Sequence record: PQ471515.1
DNA: 64,000 nt
Strand: one strand, 5' to 3'
In this document: in pieces, positions 1 through 62,213 of the stretch
Layout of the letters: each line of letters starts with the position of its first letter
Numbering within the stretch: the stretch's first letter is position 1
Notes under the pieces: model-generated
Database searches by the model: none
What the model was told of the DNA's origin: nothing
What the model saw: only the letters and a program-made list of their open reading frames with translations
Program-made: the position numbers and the translations under genes

Positions 1-412
1 ATGAAACCCGTTAGATGATGGCATAGTTTGAACCACTCACGGCAATGCGGCTGTATAAAGAACTCCAATAGGATAAAGAGAGTTCCTCGATAGACATATA
101 AGGATCGCACCTTACCAATTATCTAAGGGAGATTTCATGAGAAATTTGCGGTCGTAATTTATACAAAATAGTTGCGTCCAAAATTCGTGAAATCAAATAC
201 AAGTACTGGTCATATGGTATTTGTATTATGTGTCGGGATGTTTAAGACCGACGACCGTTGCTACAAGAACCGCGATAGAGAGAAACAGAGCAACCCGCTT
301 TCGCCTCGTAAGAGAATTCGTGATATGAACTATGTGAAGGCCACCAGCGTCAAACTTTTTTGTTCTTTCCCCTGCGGGGGGATGAAATATGCTCAAGCAA
401 ACCCCGTCAATA
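1..412 (+). ncRNA. Candidate large structured non-coding RNA, copy A (5' part lies upstream of the window)
   Basis: Block-wise homology to 49838-50310. Stems include CCCGTTAG 7-14/CTAAGGG 123-129, GAACTC 60-65/GAGTTC 80-85, GATTTCATGA 131-140/TCGTGAAATC 185-194, GTCGG 232-236/CCGAC 248-252 and 363-372/377-386. G-U wobbles occur on the + strand. Confidence 0.65.
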
Positions 413-440
413 TTAATTAAAACAAATCATAGTACTTTCG

Positions 441-5668: not shown

Positions 5669-5942
5669 ATCGAATGAAGTACTTGTTGCTGAAACGATGA
5701 AGATGGTTTATACCATAACAACTAGTAATGATATGTCTTACCCAATTAAGTCCAAGTTGAGGGATATAACTCTTCAGGTTATACAGCAGTACTACAAATC
5801 TAAACACAAAAGTATTATTAATGTTTATCGTGACTATGAAAGGATTCGCATTTTGTTCTGGAACAAGAATCGAGTTCGTTCGGAATGTGATATAGAAAAC
5901 TTTAAATTTGAGAATCTTTATTGTTACAAAGCGGGACAATAG
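5658..5942 (+). CDS. Hypothetical protein
   Basis: ORF track 5640..5942; ATG 5658. Confidence 0.6.
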   Translation: MANKSNEVLVAETMKMVYTITTSNDMSYPIKSKLRDITLQVIQQYYKSKHKSIINVYRDYERIRILFWNKNRVRSECDIENFKFENLYCYKAGQ

Positions 5943-5960
5943 CTCAAGTAGTGATATAAT
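5933..5960 (+). promoter_or_regulatory. Promoter GGGACA-N16-TATAAT with TG extended -10
   Basis: One of six instances with identical spacing. Confidence 0.7.
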
Positions 5961-8329: not shown

Positions 8330-9468
8330 CCCTTTTACAAATATATGAAGATTTAATGCACTTATGTAATACTCGTGAGGCTTTCTTTTATGTGGATCAT
8401 AAAAGTCCTGCTGGTGGAACATATCGTGTATTCAGTTATCGTCTAGCATCATATACCGATTTCATGCAACCCAATGCATTAGAAACCCGTGGTTCTATGT
8501 GGGAAATTGATGAAGACGGTGATATGATTCGTTGTGCTGCTCGTACTATGAAAAAGTTCTTCAATGCTTACGAAAATCCTGCTACAATGTTCCCTGCTGA
8601 TACCACATTCGATGACATTGCAGTAGTGATGCCTAAGTTGGATGGTTCAGTAATCAGTACTTACCGTGATAATGATGGTGTAATTCGTTGTAAATCACAT
8701 ACTGCATTGTATTCAGACCATGCGATTAACAGTACTCGTCTTCTCAATGAGAACCAAAATTTGTATCAATACATTGACGAAGCAGACCGTTTGGGCTATA
8801 CTGTTAATCTGGAGTATACAAGTCCAGAGTACCGTATTGTATTACCATACCAGGTTGAACAAATATTTGTACTAAACGTTCGCCATCGCAAGAGTGGTGA
8901 ACTATTATGTGGTTCTGCATTACGTAACAAGTTTCCATGCCTTGCACAGTACAGTACTAACATGACAGGTAAAGATATTCATTACACTTTCCCTGTTCGT
9001 GCTACATTCAAAGAAAGTGTTGAAGAAGTTAAGAAAATGCTTGACATTGAAGGTTTTGTGTGCATCCTAAATAATGGTACAATGTGCAAAATCAAAACCG
9101 ACTGGTATTGTTCTTTGCATTTAACGAAAGACAGTATTATAATCGATTCCCATTTATATGAAGCTGTATTAAATGGTTCGAGTGATGATTTAAAACAGTT
9201 GTTCAGTACTGACGAATATGCTACCCAAAAGATATTAAGAATGGAACAACTAGTCTTTTCGTGCTATAATGCTTTACAAGATGAAGTTGAAAGCTTCGTC
9301 AAGGAACACAAGCACTTGGAGCGAAAGGAATTCGCTAAGAAGGTTCAGGAGTGTTTAACTAATGAACTGAATCGTCAGGGCTTGGCCTTTGCAATGTACA
9401 ACAATAAGAAAGTCGATTACAAAGAGACTCTTATTAAGTACATGAAAATTGTACTAAAGGATTTTTAG
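8326..9468 (+). CDS. rnlA: RNA ligase 1 (T4 RnlA/gp63-like)
   Basis: Motif I PKLDGS, motif IV IEGFV, KIKTDWY; 380 aa. Confidence 0.9.
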   Translation: MTLLQIYEDLMHLCNTREAFFYVDHKSPAGGTYRVFSYRLASYTDFMQPNALETRGSMWEIDEDGDMIRCAARTMKKFFNAYENPATMFPADTTFDDIAVVMPKLDGSVISTYRDNDGVIRCKSHTALYSDHAINSTRLLNENQNLYQYIDEADRLGYTVNLEYTSPEYRIVLPYQVEQIFVLNVRHRKSGELLCGSALRNKFPCLAQYSTNMTGKDIHYTFPVRATFKESVEEVKKMLDIEGFVCILNNGTMCKIKTDWYCSLHLTKDSIIIDSHLYEAVLNGSSDDLKQLFSTDEYATQKILRMEQLVFSCYNALQDEVESFVKEHKHLERKEFAKKVQECLTNELNRQGLAFAMYNNKKVDYKETLIKYMKIVLKDF

Positions 9469-9494
9469 TACTATCTAGCCTAGCACAAGGAGAA

Positions 9495-9752
9495 GTGATG
9501 GCTAAACCTAAGTATAAAAATGACGGTTCCCTTTCTCCGACAGAATTCAGGAAAATACAAGAAGAAATCGATGAATTACAGCACAAACGCTCTAAGAAAG
9601 GTGTGAAGATTAGTAAGAAACGAATCGAGAATACTTTCGGGTGTAGTAGTACTGAATACAAGAAGAAAAGGAAACCAAAAGGTGTTAAGCCGAGAATACA
9701 TGATGTAACTCGCTATACATCGAAACGTGAAAATAAATTCGACCCACTATAA
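9495..9752 (+). CDS. Small Lys/Arg-rich protein
   Basis: AAGGAG upstream; highly basic sequence. Confidence 0.6.
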   Translation: MMAKPKYKNDGSLSPTEFRKIQEEIDELQHKRSKKGVKISKKRIENTFGCSSTEYKKKRKPKGVKPRIHDVTRYTSKRENKFDPL

Positions 9753-12548: not shown

Positions 12549-12854
12549 ATGGATATACAAACATTCAATAAACTAAAGTACTATGACAATGGTTTTGCTA
12601 TTATCATTGATGAACTAGATGGAATACCATATGAGTATCATAATGATGTAATGAAGATAGTAAAAAGTATTTGTAATGATTTAAAAACTATTTTCGAAAA
12701 TGAATATGTATACGACTTAGGTACAAACAATAAGAAACTATACATAAAGAAATTCTGTGGAACGCATTGTGGTCTGATGGTTGATTTAGGTTTAAGTGCT
12801 GACAACAATTTCGAAGCATGTAGTTTATATCTGGATGAAATTCGAATCTCATGA
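12549..12854 (+). CDS. Small hypothetical protein (array)
   Basis: Abuts the upstream stop. Confidence 0.65.
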   Translation: MDIQTFNKLKYYDNGFAIIIDELDGIPYEYHNDVMKIVKSICNDLKTIFENEYVYDLGTNNKKLYIKKFCGTHCGLMVDLGLSADNNFEACSLYLDEIRIS

Positions 12855-12880
12855 GACATATCTTGATTCGGTGATATAAT
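12853..12880 (+). promoter_or_regulatory. Promoter GAGACA-N16-TATAAT with TG extended -10
   Basis: Same architecture as 5933, 20510, 24037, 29426 and 49705. Confidence 0.7.
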
Positions 12881-29417: not shown

Positions 29418-29425
29418 TAATGTGT

Positions 29426-29453
29426 GGGACATTCGTCCCATACATGATATAAT
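29426..29453 (+). promoter_or_regulatory. Promoter GGGACA-N16-TATAAT with TG extended -10
   Basis: Conserved promoter family; the -35 overlaps the hairpin TGGGAC/GTCCCA. Confidence 0.65.
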
Positions 29454-45477: not shown

Positions 45478-45879
45478 ATGACTACAATCGATGATATCTA
45501 CAGTACTATACGCAATATGAGTACAGATAGAAAAGTCTTTGGCGACAAAGAAAAGTCCAAATGTTATGGTATCGATTCTTTTGATATTATTTCATACGAA
45601 TATAATAACAACGGGACAAGTTCACTAAACATTGTGTGTCCACGAGATCCAGAAAATAATTTCATGTACGTTGAAATTAACAATGATGGTATGTTCTTTA
45701 CTAAAGTATATAAAGGTGGGAAAGAATACGAACCAATCGAAGTAATGAATGAAGAGAAATTCTTCCAAGAAGATACCATCATCAATCTTGGATTTAGTTA
45801 CAATGACTATCAAGTACTGGATCATGATTTTAAACGATACTATAATGGTTTTCTAAAGGAGTTAACGATTTACTTATGA
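45478..45879 (+). CDS. Hypothetical protein with the EE-x-FFQ C-terminal motif
   Basis: VMNEEKFFQEDTIINLG. Confidence 0.7.
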   Translation: MTTIDDIYSTIRNMSTDRKVFGDKEKSKCYGIDSFDIISYEYNNNGTSSLNIVCPRDPENNFMYVEINNDGMFFTKVYKGGKEYEPIEVMNEEKFFQEDTIINLGFSYNDYQVLDHDFKRYYNGFLKELTIYL

Positions 45880-47114
45880 AAAACAATTTTCTAGAACAAA
45901 CTATTGTGAAACACTTAGCTGGTTCACAGGCGTATGGCACAAGCACACCAGAAAGTGATACAGATTATCGTGGTATCTTCCTTGCAAACAAAGAATATAT
46001 CCTAACTCCTTTTTTTAATGTTAAGGAAGTTTCAGATACTTCTGAAGAAGATACTAAATTTTATGAAATCAATCAGTACTTAAGTCTGTATACTGAAGCT
46101 AACCCAAACATTCTTGAATCACTATGGGTTAAACCGGAACACATCGTAGAAAGTACTGAAATCTATGACTATCTACGCTCATTCAATCAGCAATTATTGA
46201 GTTCAAAGATTGCACACTCATACAGTGGATATGCATACAATCAGGTTAAGCGTATGTCTAATCACCACGGCTGGCTCGATAAGGAACGAATTGCTGAACG
46301 TAAACTAAATGAAATTTTAGAAGAACATCCAGTTGACGAAGTACTTTCATGGATGTATGATACATTCCCGCAGTATTTGGTTGACCGTTTGAATAAATCC
46401 AATCTTCACCCATTCAATGCTACAAAAATTGATTTTGAAAAATACATGCGTGATACTTCATTACAATTAGTTTCAACACAAGCATTGAAACAATATCATT
46501 TTGTACGTTTAGTACATAATTATAGTACTGATAAAGTATTAGATCGTGATTTCAATTTATTGAATTACATTTCTGGCTATGAACTAATCCATTACGGTGA
46601 AAACATCTTTGGGGTAATTATCAACCCGAATGAAAGTACAGTGAATGATGATGGTTCACTACGTTATTTCAACAAAGAACGTACTTCGGAAGAATTGAAA
46701 GTTCGTCCTGAACTCATTGTAAAATTCAATGAAAAAGAATACAAAGAAAATAGTGAGAACCGTAAGAGTTATCACAAATGGAAGCAGAATCGTAATGCCA
46801 AACGTGCTATTCTTGAATCACACCACGGTTATGACTGCAAACACGCAATGCATACAGTCAGGCTACTGAATACAGCACAGGAAGCACTTGAAACTGGTAT
46901 CATCCAAGTTCATCGCCCTGATGCTGCTATGTTGATGGACATTCGTAACGGGAAGTGGTTGTATCAAGAAGTTATGGATTATTTCAACGAAAAGGTTGAC
47001 TACATCCGAAATGTGGCGTATCATAAGACCCATCTACCGAAGAAACCAAACATAAAGTTGGCTGCGAAGGTACTATTAGATATCCGTGAAATGCAATGGT
47101 ACAGTAAAAAATAA
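45876..47114 (+). CDS. DNA polymerase-beta-superfamily nucleotidyltransferase (RlaP/YcgL-like)
   Basis: GSQAYGTSTPESDTDYRG, ANPNILESLW and KHAMHTVRLL. Confidence 0.85.
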   Translation: MKNNFLEQTIVKHLAGSQAYGTSTPESDTDYRGIFLANKEYILTPFFNVKEVSDTSEEDTKFYEINQYLSLYTEANPNILESLWVKPEHIVESTEIYDYLRSFNQQLLSSKIAHSYSGYAYNQVKRMSNHHGWLDKERIAERKLNEILEEHPVDEVLSWMYDTFPQYLVDRLNKSNLHPFNATKIDFEKYMRDTSLQLVSTQALKQYHFVRLVHNYSTDKVLDRDFNLLNYISGYELIHYGENIFGVIINPNESTVNDDGSLRYFNKERTSEELKVRPELIVKFNEKEYKENSENRKSYHKWKQNRNAKRAILESHHGYDCKHAMHTVRLLNTAQEALETGIIQVHRPDAAMLMDIRNGKWLYQEVMDYFNEKVDYIRNVAYHKTHLPKKPNIKLAAKVLLDIREMQWYSKK

Positions 47115-47594: not shown

Positions 47595-47969
47595 ATGAGT
47601 GTACTAGAAATTATTGTTTCAAAAGTTTTAATACCATATTGGAAACCAATTTTGGTAGTAGGAGTAATGGCAGGTTGTGTTTACGGTGGATGGTCAGCAA
47701 ATACTTATTATACTGGTTATAAAGAAAGTATTGACCAAAAAATAGAAAAGAAAGTTGATTCTGCACTCGCTAAGATGCAGCAAGAAAATGCAAAAAACTA
47801 TATAGAAACCAAAAAGATAATGCAAGATAATGCTAAAGTTATCGAGACACAAGTGCCTATTATAGTAGAAAGAGAAGTTTACAAAAACGTATGTCTAGAT
47901 GAAGATGGCGTTAAACTTCTGAATGAACTTAAACAGAATTCCCTTGCAGCGAGGAATAAATTCAAATGA
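47595..47969 (+). CDS. Inner-membrane spanin (Rz-like)
   Basis: N-terminal TM plus coiled coil; overlaps a downstream lipoprotein gene. Confidence 0.7.
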   Translation: MSVLEIIVSKVLIPYWKPILVVGVMAGCVYGGWSANTYYTGYKESIDQKIEKKVDSALAKMQQENAKNYIETKKIMQDNAKVIETQVPIIVEREVYKNVCLDEDGVKLLNELKQNSLAARNKFK

Positions 47970-48282: not shown

Positions 48283-48894
48283 ATGTCAAAATATCAGGTC
48301 TACTATGTTGCCAAACTATCACTTCTTGATGAGTTAAATCAAAGAAGTACACAGATGAAACGCTATACATATAACGGTGTTACTTTCCGATACTTCCCAC
48401 AAAAAGTACTTACATTCGTTAAGAATTGTAAATGCGTTGCGTGTGGTATTGAAGCCACTGAAGTTCGCATTGAGCGTTCACATAGCACAGATCCGGTATA
48501 TGGTAAACCTCACTTAAATGTCTATGCAGTTTGTGGTCTATATGAAGTACTGATGACAGTAGATCATAACCAACTAGCATCTAAGGGTGGACCTGATTTA
48601 GAGTCAAATTACAACACCATGTGTTCACGTTGTAACAGTCTTCGTTCTAATAAAACTGAATCAGTAGATGAATTCCTGGAAAAAGTTAAGGGTAGAAATC
48701 TACTGGAAGAGCATATGAATGATTTTTTCAATAAAGATAAGAAGAAATCTAAAATTCCTACTCCAGAAGAATTGGAAGAACGCCGTTTACGTACAGAACT
48801 ATGGGAAACCGACCATATATGGCATGTTCGTGATTTTGGACGACATATGAAAGCTCTAAAAAAAGAACAAAAGAAATTGAATAATCACAATTAA
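48283..48894 (+). CDS. HNH endonuclease
   Basis: CVACG, TVDH...SKGG...NYNTMCSRCNSLRSNK. Confidence 0.85.
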   Translation: MSKYQVYYVAKLSLLDELNQRSTQMKRYTYNGVTFRYFPQKVLTFVKNCKCVACGIEATEVRIERSHSTDPVYGKPHLNVYAVCGLYEVLMTVDHNQLASKGGPDLESNYNTMCSRCNSLRSNKTESVDEFLEKVKGRNLLEEHMNDFFNKDKKKSKIPTPEELEERRLRTELWETDHIWHVRDFGRHMKALKKEQKKLNNHN

Positions 48895-49305: not shown

Positions 49306-49703
49306 TGCTAAAAGAATTAGATTTTTCAAACTTAGAAATCATCAGTGCTGTTAAAAATATCTCTGACTTTGGAGATGAGAAGTCAGTACTGGTAACTGTT
49401 ACATTCGTCAAAGAACAGGATAGCTATAGCCATTTAGATGGTATTGAAGAACTAATTCACAAGACTAATCTACAAAACGATGGTAAACTCATTAAGCTTC
49501 AGGCTTCCTATACGCAAAAATCGTCATTTTTTGTAGACCTAAATAATGTAGTCAAGGTGGTATACAATCACCCTGAACACAAATACAGGAACACGACAAG
49601 AAACGAGAATGATGCTATAGACTCCAATATCAAAGAGGATGTCGAATTCATCAACACAATTTTTGACCGTTGTTCCAAGGATTTGAAAAAGGTATACATG
49701 TAA
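49305..49703 (+). CDS. Hypothetical protein
   Basis: TAATG overlap with the upstream gene. Confidence 0.7.
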   Translation: MLKELDFSNLEIISAVKNISDFGDEKSVLVTVTFVKEQDSYSHLDGIEELIHKTNLQNDGKLIKLQASYTQKSSFFVDLNNVVKVVYNHPEHKYRNTTRNENDAIDSNIKEDVEFINTIFDRCSKDLKKVYM

Positions 49704-49704
49704 C

Positions 49705-49732
49705 GGGACATAATACATCCTAGTGATATAAT
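49705..49732 (+). promoter_or_regulatory. Promoter GGGACA-N16-TATAAT with TG extended -10, firing into the non-coding element
   Basis: Conserved promoter family; no credible CDS for ~660 nt downstream. Confidence 0.7.
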
Positions 49733-49737
49733 GTATA

Positions 49738-50390
49738 TTGTAAAATGACAACGGACATTGAAAAATGGATAATGAGAACCTACTTCTCTTGAAAATGTAA
49801 AGGATAGATGAGCTTTACCGTTGTAGCGAACAGCAAAAGAAACCTGTTAGAGTACTGGCAATCAAACAAACACGAGATAAGACCACGAATCACGGCGACA
49901 CGGCTGTATAAAGAACTCCAATAAGCACACAGAGAGTTCCTAGATAGATGTATAAGGTTCGCACCTTACGAATTTGCTAAGGGAGTTCAAGGATTGTGGA
50001 CGCGATTTTACAAGAAAGTTGCGTCCAAAATTTGAGAACAGGTACTACTTTGATCGAATAGAGTTTAGTACTGAGTGCTGTTGATGAAAAGACCAGCGAC
50101 CGTTGCATATGACTGCGATAGAGAGAAACCGAGCAACCCGCTTTCGCTCTCTAAATTTTGGTACAGGAAAGATCCGTCCAAAATTTGAGAAATTCGCAAT
50201 TCGATAATATCCGATGCCATCATCGTCAAGAGAGACTTAATTGTCTCTTTTTTATTACCTTCATTCCCCTGCGGGGGGATGAAATAGTCCTCAACAAATC
50301 CCGTCAAGCTTTTAAAGTACATTATCATTTTCAGAAGGAACTAGTTTACGAAGTAAACGTAGTGACTTCTTGAGTTACGAGAGAACGAAG
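49738..50390 (+). ncRNA. Candidate large structured non-coding RNA, copy B (homology to copy A over ~49838-50310)
   Basis: ~690 nt CDS-free gap, upstream promoter, conserved blocks and compensatory stems relative to 1-412; 5' and 3' ends are inferred. Confidence 0.65.
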
Positions 50391-50393
50391 TGA

Positions 50394-50822
50394 ATGAGTA
50401 ACACAACGAAAATATCCAATACATCTGAATTAACACAAATGTTATTCAAAGAATATTTTGAGTATCAAATCAAAAGCGATCATAATTTGGTTCAGACCTA
50501 TTTGAAGAGAATCAAAGATCCATTAAGTTTAAACAAAGGAACTGAATTTTATAACAGTATTTTAGACTTTATTAATTTAGTTCATACAAACAGACCTATT
50601 GTAGTTTTCTTCTTTGATAAATCAATTCCTGTAGAAGTTCCTGATAATGTATTTTTTGTTACTGAAACTGATTTAAGTAATCAAAGTACTGTAAGTAGAT
50701 TAAGGAATTGCTTACTTATAATTTGTGATTCTTCATTATATAACAATAGAGTACTATGGAATAGAAGTAAGAGAAATGCAGTTTCAGAAATGAATCCTGA
50801 AGTTACCTTTATTATTAACTAA
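50394..50822 (+). CDS. Hypothetical protein
   Basis: ORF directly downstream of the candidate RNA. Confidence 0.7.
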   Translation: MSNTTKISNTSELTQMLFKEYFEYQIKSDHNLVQTYLKRIKDPLSLNKGTEFYNSILDFINLVHTNRPIVVFFFDKSIPVEVPDNVFFVTETDLSNQSTVSRLRNCLLIICDSSLYNNRVLWNRSKRNAVSEMNPEVTFIIN

Positions 50823-61213: not shown

Positions 61214-61288
61214 AAGCTGGGACAAGTTAACATCTTCTGATATAATTACTAGTATCTGAACATCACTTGATGATAAAGAGATAAGATT

Positions 61289-61971: not shown

Positions 61972-62213
61972 TGAATATTGATAAAGTATCATCTCGTGCA
62001 AAACATTTAGCTGACACATTGGGTGTTGAATTTAAAATGCCTGATATGGAAGCTGCAAAAGTTAAAGCACAACGTAAAATTCACAAAATGAAAGAATACA
62101 CTACTAAGAAAGAACAGTACGATAAAGCGGTTGCTTATATTATTGAAGCTTTCAGTAAAGATGATATTTTGGCATTCATCGCTTCAGTAGAGGTTTCGAG
62201 CAACCCTAAATAA
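61971..62213 (+). CDS. Small hypothetical protein
   Basis: TAATG overlap with the upstream gene. Confidence 0.7.
   Translation: MNIDKVSSRAKHLADTLGVEFKMPDMEAAKVKAQRKIHKMKEYTTKKEQYDKAVAYIIEAFSKDDILAFIASVEVSSNPK

Follow-up and report, generated by a model that had tools for sequence, protein, structure and literature searches.

We show that the gap at 49.7-50.4 kb of the analysed DNA (a 64-kb window of a 121Q/PBECO4-type jumbo coliphage) holds a gene for a roughly 0.6-kb, intricately folded non-coding RNA that matches no catalogued RNA family, although its transcription is so far inferred, as no expression data were found for any member. Window positions 49739-50313 (+) and 1-417 (+) are paralogous copies of one element, hereafter copy B and copy A. 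The element occurs 2-5 times per genome in about 70 RaK2-like phage records and also sits on small integrated islands in enterobacterial chromosomes. The earlier note had proposed a phage-encoded, plus-strand, large structured RNA of the GOLLD/ROOL size class, multi-copy and of no recognised class, and this core claim stood up to every test that we could run. At the same time, the element starts at the inferred transcription start near 49739 and not at 49838, conserved 3′ hairpins extend to about 50393, the copy number in this phage group is four per genome and not two, and the RNA is not confined to phages.

To evaluate the relationship between the two copies, we aligned them over 49837-50313 (copy B) and 1-417 (copy A) and obtained 77% column identity. 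BLAST gave an E value of 5e-43 for the central 271 columns and of 2e-10 for the 3′ hairpin. A profile HMM and a covariance model found exactly these two places in the 64 kb, scoring 364 and 317 bits and 107 and 109 bits for copies B and A, respectively, while the next-best covariance-model hit scored 15 bits. Copy A is cut by the window start, so that its first base corresponds to 49837 of copy B; its HMM match covered profile positions 64-490 and its covariance-model match lay at 195-332. In the identical public record (Escherichia phage Turkey3, PQ471515.1) copy A continues about 100 nt further 5′ and is preceded by its promoter. A looser pattern search returned more than 100 loci, nearly all of them chance matches, which were filtered with nhmmer.

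We next examined whether the gap could encode a protein or a known RNA. The upstream ORF ends at 49703 and the next credible ORF starts at 50394, with no ORF spanning the element. No reading frame is conserved across relatives: the longest stop-free stretches are 50-96 aa, in varying frames and on either strand, and indels between copies are of arbitrary length and not multiples of three. Small ORFs annotated over the element in some records are not conserved between records, and Pfam gave nothing. Searches of the whole window against Rfam 15 (including GOLLD, ROOL, OLE, HEARO, group I and II introns, RNase P, tmRNA, 6S and phi29 pRNA) gave 0 matches at gathering thresholds, and the region 49600-50500 gave only three chance-level matches at E up to 10, at 13-18 bits against thresholds of 37-55. 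ARAGORN found no tRNA or tmRNA gene in the window.

To determine whether the element is maintained as a folded RNA, we built a model of 15 helices (82 pairs, two of the helices pseudoknots) on 39 non-redundant copies sharing less than 95% identity. Results showed clearly that base pairing is preserved: 97.2% of cells were canonical, against 76.9% in shuffled controls and 38-44% in slid controls, and 63 of the 82 pairs showed compensatory changes. The covariation score was 0.577, against 0.20 for shuffled and 0.07-0.10 for slid controls, and 0 of 500 shuffles reached any observed measure. G-U cells outnumbered A-C cells 254 to 19, which points to a plus-strand RNA, as the earlier note had argued from the wobble pairs. 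The MFE z-score was -3.56 on the + strand and -2.10 on the - strand. In addition, 75 columns are invariant in the 39 copies, whose mean column identity is 60%, and such strong conservation of junction nucleotides is typical of RNAs with a defined tertiary fold.

In copy B the inferred start near 49739 is followed by a 5′ leader (49739-49779) whose length and sequence vary between copies; most relatives carry a short conserved stretch followed by a covarying hairpin here, and in 12 of 38 copies, including copy A, a hairpin plus a run of five or more U lies between the promoter and the core. Helices H1 (49780-49790 with 49800-49807; 8 pairs, 7 with compensatory changes, 92% paired) and H2 (49812-49814 with 49825-49827; 4 pairs, 3 with compensatory changes, 98% paired) are separated by an invariant GAUGAG. 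The 5′ domain (49830-49907) is closed by H3 (49830-49834 with 49903-49907), which is 99% paired with compensatory changes in 4 of 5 pairs, and encloses H4 (49844-49847 with 49892-49895) and a variable insertion. H4, in which CCTG(T) pairs with ACGG, is 97% paired, and its U-A pair changes to A-U, C-G and U-G in relatives. It replaces the pairing of CCYGTTAG with CTAAGGG proposed in the earlier note, which is not supported, since relatives that change or lack TTAG show no compensation.

Further downstream, hairpins H5 (49913-49918 with 49934-49939; all 6 pairs with compensatory changes, 96% paired) and H6 (49953-49956 with 49965-49968; 99% paired) are accompanied by nearly invariant unpaired blocks at 49942-49952 and 49977-49985, where columns are invariant or above 90% conserved in the 39 copies. 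H7 (49985-49988 with 50036-50039; all 5 pairs with compensatory changes, 96% paired) encloses hairpin H8 (49998-50003 with 50021-50026) and the AAAAUU tail. H8 is a perfect 6-bp stem in copy B, as read directly from the sequence, yet its domain is absent from about a quarter of copies and could not be modelled consistently on the MAFFT alignment. The long hairpin H9 (50041-50052 with 50059-50072), which follows GTTGCGTCC and which the earlier note had recognised, is 94% paired with compensatory changes in all 12 pairs. Its loop (50053-50059) forms pseudoknot PK2 with 50199-50205, in principle either within one molecule or between molecules, with 7 pairs, 99.6% paired, all 7 with compensatory changes. 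Hairpin H10 (50076-50098; 4 pairs, 3 with compensatory changes, 95.5% paired) is the GCTG/CAGC stem equivalent to GTCGG/CCGAC in copy A, and the compensatory change described in the earlier note is real.

The pseudoknotted core (50102-50205) comprises PK1 (50102-50106 with 50133-50137), H12 (50114-50118 with 50194-50198), H13 (50121-50125 with 50141-50145), H14 (50148-50150 with 50188-50190) and the 3′ strand of PK2. PK1, H12 and H13 are 100% paired in all 39 copies and carry 3, 4 and 3 pairs with compensatory changes, respectively, and H14 is 98% paired; PK1 crosses H12 and H13. This is the most conserved part of the element and the only part that BLAST detects in RaK2-type Klebsiella phages. 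An optional domain inside H14 (50151-50187) repeats 50009-50038 at 90% identity.

The 3′ part begins with a short hairpin region (50206-50229), whose local pairing differs between subtypes and could not be modelled consistently, ending in the hexamer CGTCAA (50224-50229). This hexamer and a second one at 50302-50307 are identical to each other in 38 of 39 copies, although the hexamer takes three forms across copies. An internal terminator-like hairpin (50231-50236 with 50243-50248, a 6-bp stem with three G-C pairs) followed by a run of U lies at 50230-50254; a run of at least five T is present at this place in 26 of 39 copies, but the hairpin was not called in a terminator scan and its terminator activity is inferred only. 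A GC-rich terminal hairpin (50260-50283) has a 10-bp stem, a four-base loop and a G run. Its upper five pairs are 99% paired but vary on one side only (C-G to U-G), so they show no double compensation, while its 3′ strand is nearly invariant even where the lower 5′ strand differs. The conserved 3′ block (50293-50313), with invariant or above 90% conserved columns, contains the second hexamer and marks the end of the core shared with every relative; HMM matches end here in all relatives. To examine whether the element is closed by a terminal helix, we tested GAUGAG against the 3′ block and the leader against the repeated hexamer and found no compensation. A 3′ extension (50314-50393) carries two further hairpins and a ten-base motif that occurs twice (50356-50365 and 50384-50393), abutting the start codon of the next ORF. 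The motif occurs 3 times in the window against 0.19 expected, with two of the three here. Comparable hairpins and motifs follow the core in most relatives and in the chromosomal copies; that the extension belongs to the same transcript is inferred.

Copy B is preceded by a predicted promoter at 49705-49732, with an upstream box GGGACA (49705-49710), a 16-nt spacer and an extended -10 TGaTATAAT (49724-49732), 10 of 12 positions matching plus TG. The same two-box arrangement lies upstream of 32 of 38 aligned copies and the extended -10 upstream of 37 of 38. This promoter class occurs 6 times in the window, all on the + strand, against 0.16 expected, and matches the "divergent RpoD-like" class described for phage CBB (PMC5259590).

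Full-length, structure-preserving copies with the same promoter were also found on small integrase-bearing islands in Escherichia, Enterobacter, Serratia and other chromosomes. Chromosomal copies, not used to build the model, keep 71-80 of 74-81 pairs. The E. coli island matches phages only over the core, at 80.6% identity and ending at the conserved 3′ block, and its flanks are unrelated, indicating that the RNA itself is the selected unit. PADLOC gave no convincing hit to known defence systems on the islands, the 286-aa island protein has only hypothetical relatives in Enterobacteriaceae, and no copy was found on plasmids. The neighbouring genes (an RlaP-like nucleotidyltransferase, a spanin, an HNH endonuclease, DUF7325, DUF5856 and a Dam methylase) are not consistent across copies.

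Taken with due reserve, our preferred reading is that of a stand-alone gene for a structural RNA that acts in trans, either self-assembling or serving as a scaffold or decoy for a protein. RNA polymerase would start near 49739 and transcribe rightward, giving a transcript of about 575 nt to the end of the conserved core and about 650 nt with the 3′ hairpins, predicted to fold into two multi-helix domains, the 3′ one locked by two pseudoknots. The phage carries four diverged copies, so the RNA is probably made in quantity, and the islands would produce the same RNA. In CBB, EJP2 and Hallingskeid one copy lies between minus-strand genes, followed in CBB about 200 nt later by a hairpin flanked by A and T runs, and in the commonest chromosomal island the next gene is a convergent cI-like repressor. 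Yet most phage copies, including both in this window, are followed by co-oriented genes with no terminator in between, the terminator-like hairpin upstream of still-conserved sequence is odd for a simple stand-alone RNA gene, and four to five copies kept for a long time at conserved genome positions would also suit an element that acts where it lies. Action in trans, oligomerisation and protein binding are suggestions only, as are the roles listed in the earlier note (scaffold, decoy, antitoxin, packaging RNA, primer); our data argue mildly against a simple cis-leader and leave scaffold and primer open.

The closest known systems are the GOLLD and ROOL RNAs, shown by cryo-EM to form RNA-only multimers (bioRxiv 10.1101/2024.12.08.627333). 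They resemble the present RNA in size class (about 0.5-0.8 kb), in a fold with many helices, pseudoknots and highly conserved junctions, in carriage by phages and integrated elements, and in being non-coding and of unknown function. However, this similarity is one of kind only: neither family's Rfam model matches, and the present RNA occurs in 2-5 diverged copies per genome, is restricted to RaK2-like jumbo phages and islands of Enterobacterales, has a phage-class promoter and has no tRNA genes nearby. The related jumbo phage PA5oct has four RNA-seq-defined non-coding RNAs of 236-619 nt (ncRNA001-004, PMC7318152), likewise long transcripts in intergenic gaps, two of them very abundant during infection. 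These are not detectably homologous, as nhmmer at maximum sensitivity found only noise at E up to 100 and the covariance model gave no hit better than E 0.2 and none inside the annotated RNAs. In the literature we searched, no description of this RNA was found, although a catalogue of about 10,000 short candidate viral RNAs (PMC10690425, mean length 67 nt), whose supplementary models were not compared, may contain fragments of it.

A less likely alternative is that each copy is an origin of phage DNA replication, whose transcript folds, stays hybridised to the template near its G-rich 3′ hairpin and is processed to prime leading-strand synthesis. This would resemble the promoter-dependent R-loop origins of T4, which has several origins per genome, and the folded pre-primer RNA II of ColE1 plasmids, a promoter-driven transcript of similar length whose fold appears to matter for primer formation. 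T4 origin transcripts are not known to be conserved structured RNAs. In favour of this view, the 2-5 dispersed copies lie at conserved positions, for example about 35, 178, 262 and 341 kb in GAP32, all on one strand; the promoter class is the one found in CBB mainly upstream of DNA-synthesis genes, and these phages have a T4-like replisome (PMC5259590). The length of about 575 nt from the start to the 3′ block, together with a G run in a stable 3′ hairpin, would fit a folded pre-primer, and small islands with no recognisable replication genes carry the module, which would allow them to be replicated during infection. Against it, cumulative GC skew rises monotonically through both copies, although this is weak evidence as skew in such phages may simply follow transcription. 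Moreover, no origin-type iterons were found, nothing shows that the islands replicate, and two pseudoknots and 75 invariant columns are far more structure than R-loop priming is known to need.

It is also unlikely, in our view, that the RNA is a cis-acting leader of long operon transcripts, acting on its own transcript or polymerase by processive antitermination in the manner of HK022 put RNA, or by controlling stability or translation of the genes downstream. Like the two paralogous put RNAs, both window copies and most phage copies sit directly after a promoter and before co-oriented genes; the terminator-like hairpins within 26 of 39 copies and in the leader of 12 of 38 would suit a read-through control, and the conserved 3′ hairpins reach the ribosome-binding region of the next gene in many loci. 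Yet the copies in CBB, EJP2 and Hallingskeid mentioned above and the cI-type islands have no co-oriented downstream gene, downstream genes differ between paralogues and between phages and islands, and the other five promoters of the same class in the window have no such RNA behind them. The put RNAs are about 70 nt with two stem-loops and the present RNA is about 575 nt with 15 helices; known antiterminator RNAs appear to be 5-8 times smaller.

A mobile DNA element with hairpins acting in single-stranded DNA, or a degenerate self-splicing intron, is very improbable: although the element is multi-copy, sharply bounded (homology between the E. coli island and the phages starts and ends exactly at the core) and found next to integrases in chromosomes, an HNH endonuclease gene lies 0.8 kb upstream of copy B, and G-T wobble could be tolerated in single-stranded DNA, the phage copies are old paralogues at conserved syntenic positions across genera, 60-77% identical within a genome, they bring their own promoter, fifteen helices with two pseudoknots are not what transposon ends look like, no transposase is consistently adjacent, Rfam group I and group II intron models do not match even at E up to 10, and the copies do not interrupt genes.

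Few large bacterial or phage RNAs with complex folds are known, and each one found so far (RNase P, group I and II introns, OLE, GOLLD, ROOL, raiA) has opened new biochemistry or structural biology. More speculatively, and with a low probability, the RNA could be a new class of functional RNA machine rather than a passive scaffold, either a ribozyme or a self-assembling multimer useful both to jumbo phages and to chromosomal islands, or the first folded, pseudoknotted primer RNA that defines phage replication origins and that chromosomal islands copy to exploit infecting jumbo phages. The family sits in cultivable E. coli phages (121Q, PBECO4 and relatives) that are also being considered for therapy, and is currently mis-annotated or left blank in about 70 public genomes; a covariance model would let annotators mark these genes and remove spurious small ORFs. 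Its presence on small integrase-bearing islands in Escherichia, Enterobacter, Klebsiella-related and Serratia chromosomes points to an RNA-level link, not found described in the literature we could search, between jumbo phages and chromosomal mobile elements.

BLAST placed the region in about 70 jumbo-phage records. Several Escherichia phages are 100% identical, for example Turkey3 (PQ471515.1), in which the window begins at base 62001. The window is 95-97% identical to 121Q and PBECO4, and 65-75% identical to GAP32, CBB, Serratia phage BF, Yersinia phage fHe-Yen9-04, Salmonella phages Munch and 7t3, Xanthomonas phages XbC2 and XaC1, and Erwinia phages. These are the RaK2-like jumbo phages. 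Every record has 2-5 matching places, and 121Q-type phages have four.

An earlier note had described a gap without a credible coding sequence behind a phage promoter, with an element paralogous to one at the window start, and this observation holds. The upstream open reading frame, encoding a DUF7325 protein, ends at 49703, and the next credible one begins at 50394. A promoter with a TG-extended -10 box was called at 49705-49732. Copy B (49837-50313) and copy A (1-417) align with 77% column identity, with conserved blocks separated by variable stretches (BLAST E 5e-43), and a profile HMM and a covariance model, both built from alignments, each find exactly these two places in the window. Copy A is cut by the window start; in the identical public record it has a further 100 nt or so of conserved sequence, a leader hairpin with a U run, and the same kind of promoter.

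To collect relatives, a pattern taken from the most conserved core was used for searches, which recovered 40 loci from IMG/VR, 64 from metagenomes and 9 from bacterial genome assemblies. With nhmmer we confirmed all of them as members except one bacterial-genome locus, a chance match, and where the contig allowed, they are full length. We then aligned 39 copies that share less than 95% identity. Mean column identity in this alignment is 60%, yet 75 columns are invariant. A divergent copy lies in Klebsiella phage RaK2 (NC_019526.1), just downstream of its sigma-factor gene and under an annotated 'hypothetical protein', ORF245, at 887-1093 of the locus we extracted. Small 'hypothetical protein' reading frames are likewise annotated on top of the RNA gene in many 121Q-type records, with up to six per locus in some records; they are not conserved between records and are probably spurious.

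To derive the structure, we combined RNAalifold with our own scan for stacked covarying column pairs, which gave 15 helices with 82 pairs. Two of the helices are pseudoknots: PK1 (50102-50106 with 50133-50137) crosses helices H12 and H13, and PK2 joins the loop of the long hairpin H9 (50053-50059) to 50199-50205, 140 nt downstream. In the 39-copy alignment 97.2% of cells form a standard pair, compared with 76.9% in shuffled alignments and 38-44% when the 3' partner was slid by 1-3 columns; the covariation score is 0.577, vs. 0.20 for shuffled and 0.07-0.10 for slid controls. Changes on both sides were seen at 63 of 82 pairs, amounting to 619 cells, and no shuffle out of 500 reaches any observed measure. 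PK1, H12 and H13 pair in all 39 copies, whereas PK2 pairs in 99.6% of cells and all seven of its pairs take several pair types. Although the structure was derived from these same sequences, which inflates the comparison with slid partners, 50 further copies that were not used, including the chromosomal ones, keep 63-82 of 70-82 pairs. Copy B also has a 30-nt internal direct repeat at 90% identity (50009-50038 and 50162-50191), in which the optional domain inserted in helix H14 repeats the 3' strand and tail of hairpin H8. About a quarter of family members have this extra domain.

To examine which strand carries the RNA, we counted wobble pairs and compared the fold of both strands. In the modelled pairs there are 254 G-U cells and 19 A-C cells, and the model is 97.2% canonical on the + strand and 89.7% canonical on the - strand. 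The single-sequence fold gives a z-score of -3.56 on the + strand and -2.10 on the - strand. No reading frame is conserved, and searches with Rfam 15 and ARAGORN gave nothing. One helix proposed in the earlier note, the pairing of CCYGTTAG with CTAAGGG, is not supported, as copies that lack or change TTAG show no compensation. Instead, 49844-49847 pairs with 49892-49895, and the U-A pair of that helix becomes A-U, C-G or U-G in relatives. CTAAGGGAG is invariant but has no partner in our model.

Analysis of the upstream regions showed that 37 of 38 copies have an extended -10 box 70-125 nt before the core, and 32 of 38 also have the upstream box at the same spacing. This phage-specific promoter class, with an upstream box unlike TTGACA plus an extended -10, occurs six times in the window (5932-5960, 9242-9270, 12852-12880, 29425-29453, 49704-49732 and 61218-61246), always on the + strand, against 0.16 expected, and is therefore a general phage promoter class. 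Only the one at 49704 is followed by the RNA within the window. The class corresponds to the 'divergent RpoD-like' promoters reported for CBB and GAP32, mostly upstream of DNA-synthesis genes (PMC5259590). A hairpin plus U run lies between the promoter and the core in 12 of 38 copies, including copy A, and a terminator-like hairpin precedes the last conserved hairpin in 26 of 39 copies, including copy B at 50230-50254, although the one in copy B was not called by the terminator scan. Downstream of the core, most copies have two more hairpins, and in copy B a ten-base motif occurs twice there. We also noticed a regularity that remains unexplained: the hexamers at 50224-50229 and 50302-50307, on either side of the last hairpin, are identical to each other in 38 of 39 copies, although the hexamer takes three forms across the family, and RaK2 carries the rarest form at both places. 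Both sites may contact the same partner, but no partner could be found by covariation.

In the phages, copies lie at conserved positions, for example about 35, 178, 262 and 341 kb in GAP32, with similar positions in BF, Yen9-04 and CBB, and they are all on one strand. Neighbouring genes differ between paralogues, and most copies are followed by co-oriented genes. The copy next to the endonuclease VII gene in CBB, EJP2 and Hallingskeid, however, lies between minus-strand genes, and there it cannot be a leader. A Dam-type adenine methyltransferase gene (1090-1614, +) lies one gene downstream of copy A, and the orthologous copy in fHe-Yen9-04 lies directly upstream of an adenine methyltransferase gene and next to an endonuclease VII gene. 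A free-standing HNH endonuclease gene (48283-48894, +; Pfam HNH; PHROG 23285) lies 0.8 kb upstream of copy B; it may encode a homing endonuclease, but we saw no link to the RNA. An RlaP-like nucleotidyltransferase gene (Pfam 'RNA repair pathway DNA polymerase beta family') is found at 45876-47114 (+) and an Rz-like spanin gene at 47595-47969. GC skew does not turn at either window copy.

Eight of the nine bacterial-genome loci are full-length members. They come from Serratia fonticola (a complete chromosome, NZ_CP183218.1), Serratia sp., Enterobacter chinensis, Silvania hatchlandensis, Buttiauxella, two unnamed Enterobacteriaceae, and one 2.8-kb contig binned as Clostridium (DPOH01000171.1), which carries an island-type copy and is most likely a binning error rather than a true host. 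Full-length copies with the phage-type promoter lie in enterobacterial chromosomes, and in metagenome loci (our loci L165, L181, L185, L187 and L219), on a recurrent compact island with the order: an integrase, which is either a tyrosine or a large serine recombinase, the RNA gene, a convergent cI-like S24 repressor, a cro-like winged-helix protein, a 286-aa hypothetical protein known only from Enterobacteriaceae, an LprI-like protein, and an invertase. In S. fonticola the RNA gene lies at the edge of an island that carries a serine recombinase and two ParB-like genes, next to the chromosomal genes rof and tilS. In E. coli LR-29-1 (NZ_AP027515.1) a roughly 10.7-kb island between ffs and ybaA (about 4.9-15.6 kb of the extracted locus) carries a copy at 9001-9548 of that locus scoring 407 bits, with its own promoter and leader, where PGAP annotates nothing. 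This island has an IS3-disrupted integrase and genes for DUF4326, DUF488 and dual-OB proteins. Only its RNA core matches phages, at 80.6% identity to the 174-kb copy of Serratia phage BF, and the flanks do not match. Two of 5,426 complete E. coli genomes have the island, and no plasmid does. No match of the islands to a known defence system was found.

Comparison with known RNAs showed that no Rfam family matches, and the RNA-seq-defined ncRNAs of the related phage PA5oct are not detectably homologous. We found no paper describing this RNA, although an earlier description cannot be excluded, as the literature searched did not cover most subscription journals.

Taken together, we consider it almost certain that this is a gene for a structured RNA read from the + strand, whereas its role can be proposed only tentatively. 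Among the alternatives to a stand-alone RNA, an origin-primer model would explain the number of copies, their conserved placement, the promoter class and carriage by islands without replication genes; yet it has no direct support and the RNA seems over-built for that role, and we regard it as less likely. A cis-acting leader is more doubtful still; it fits most phage loci and the embedded terminator-like hairpins, but not the loci without downstream genes. A DNA-level mobile element is unlikely. Our preferred, though tentative, reading is that of a stand-alone, trans-acting structural RNA, because some copies have no gene to lead, because selection and horizontal transfer act on the RNA core itself, and because the degree of tertiary-type conservation resembles that of GOLLD and ROOL.
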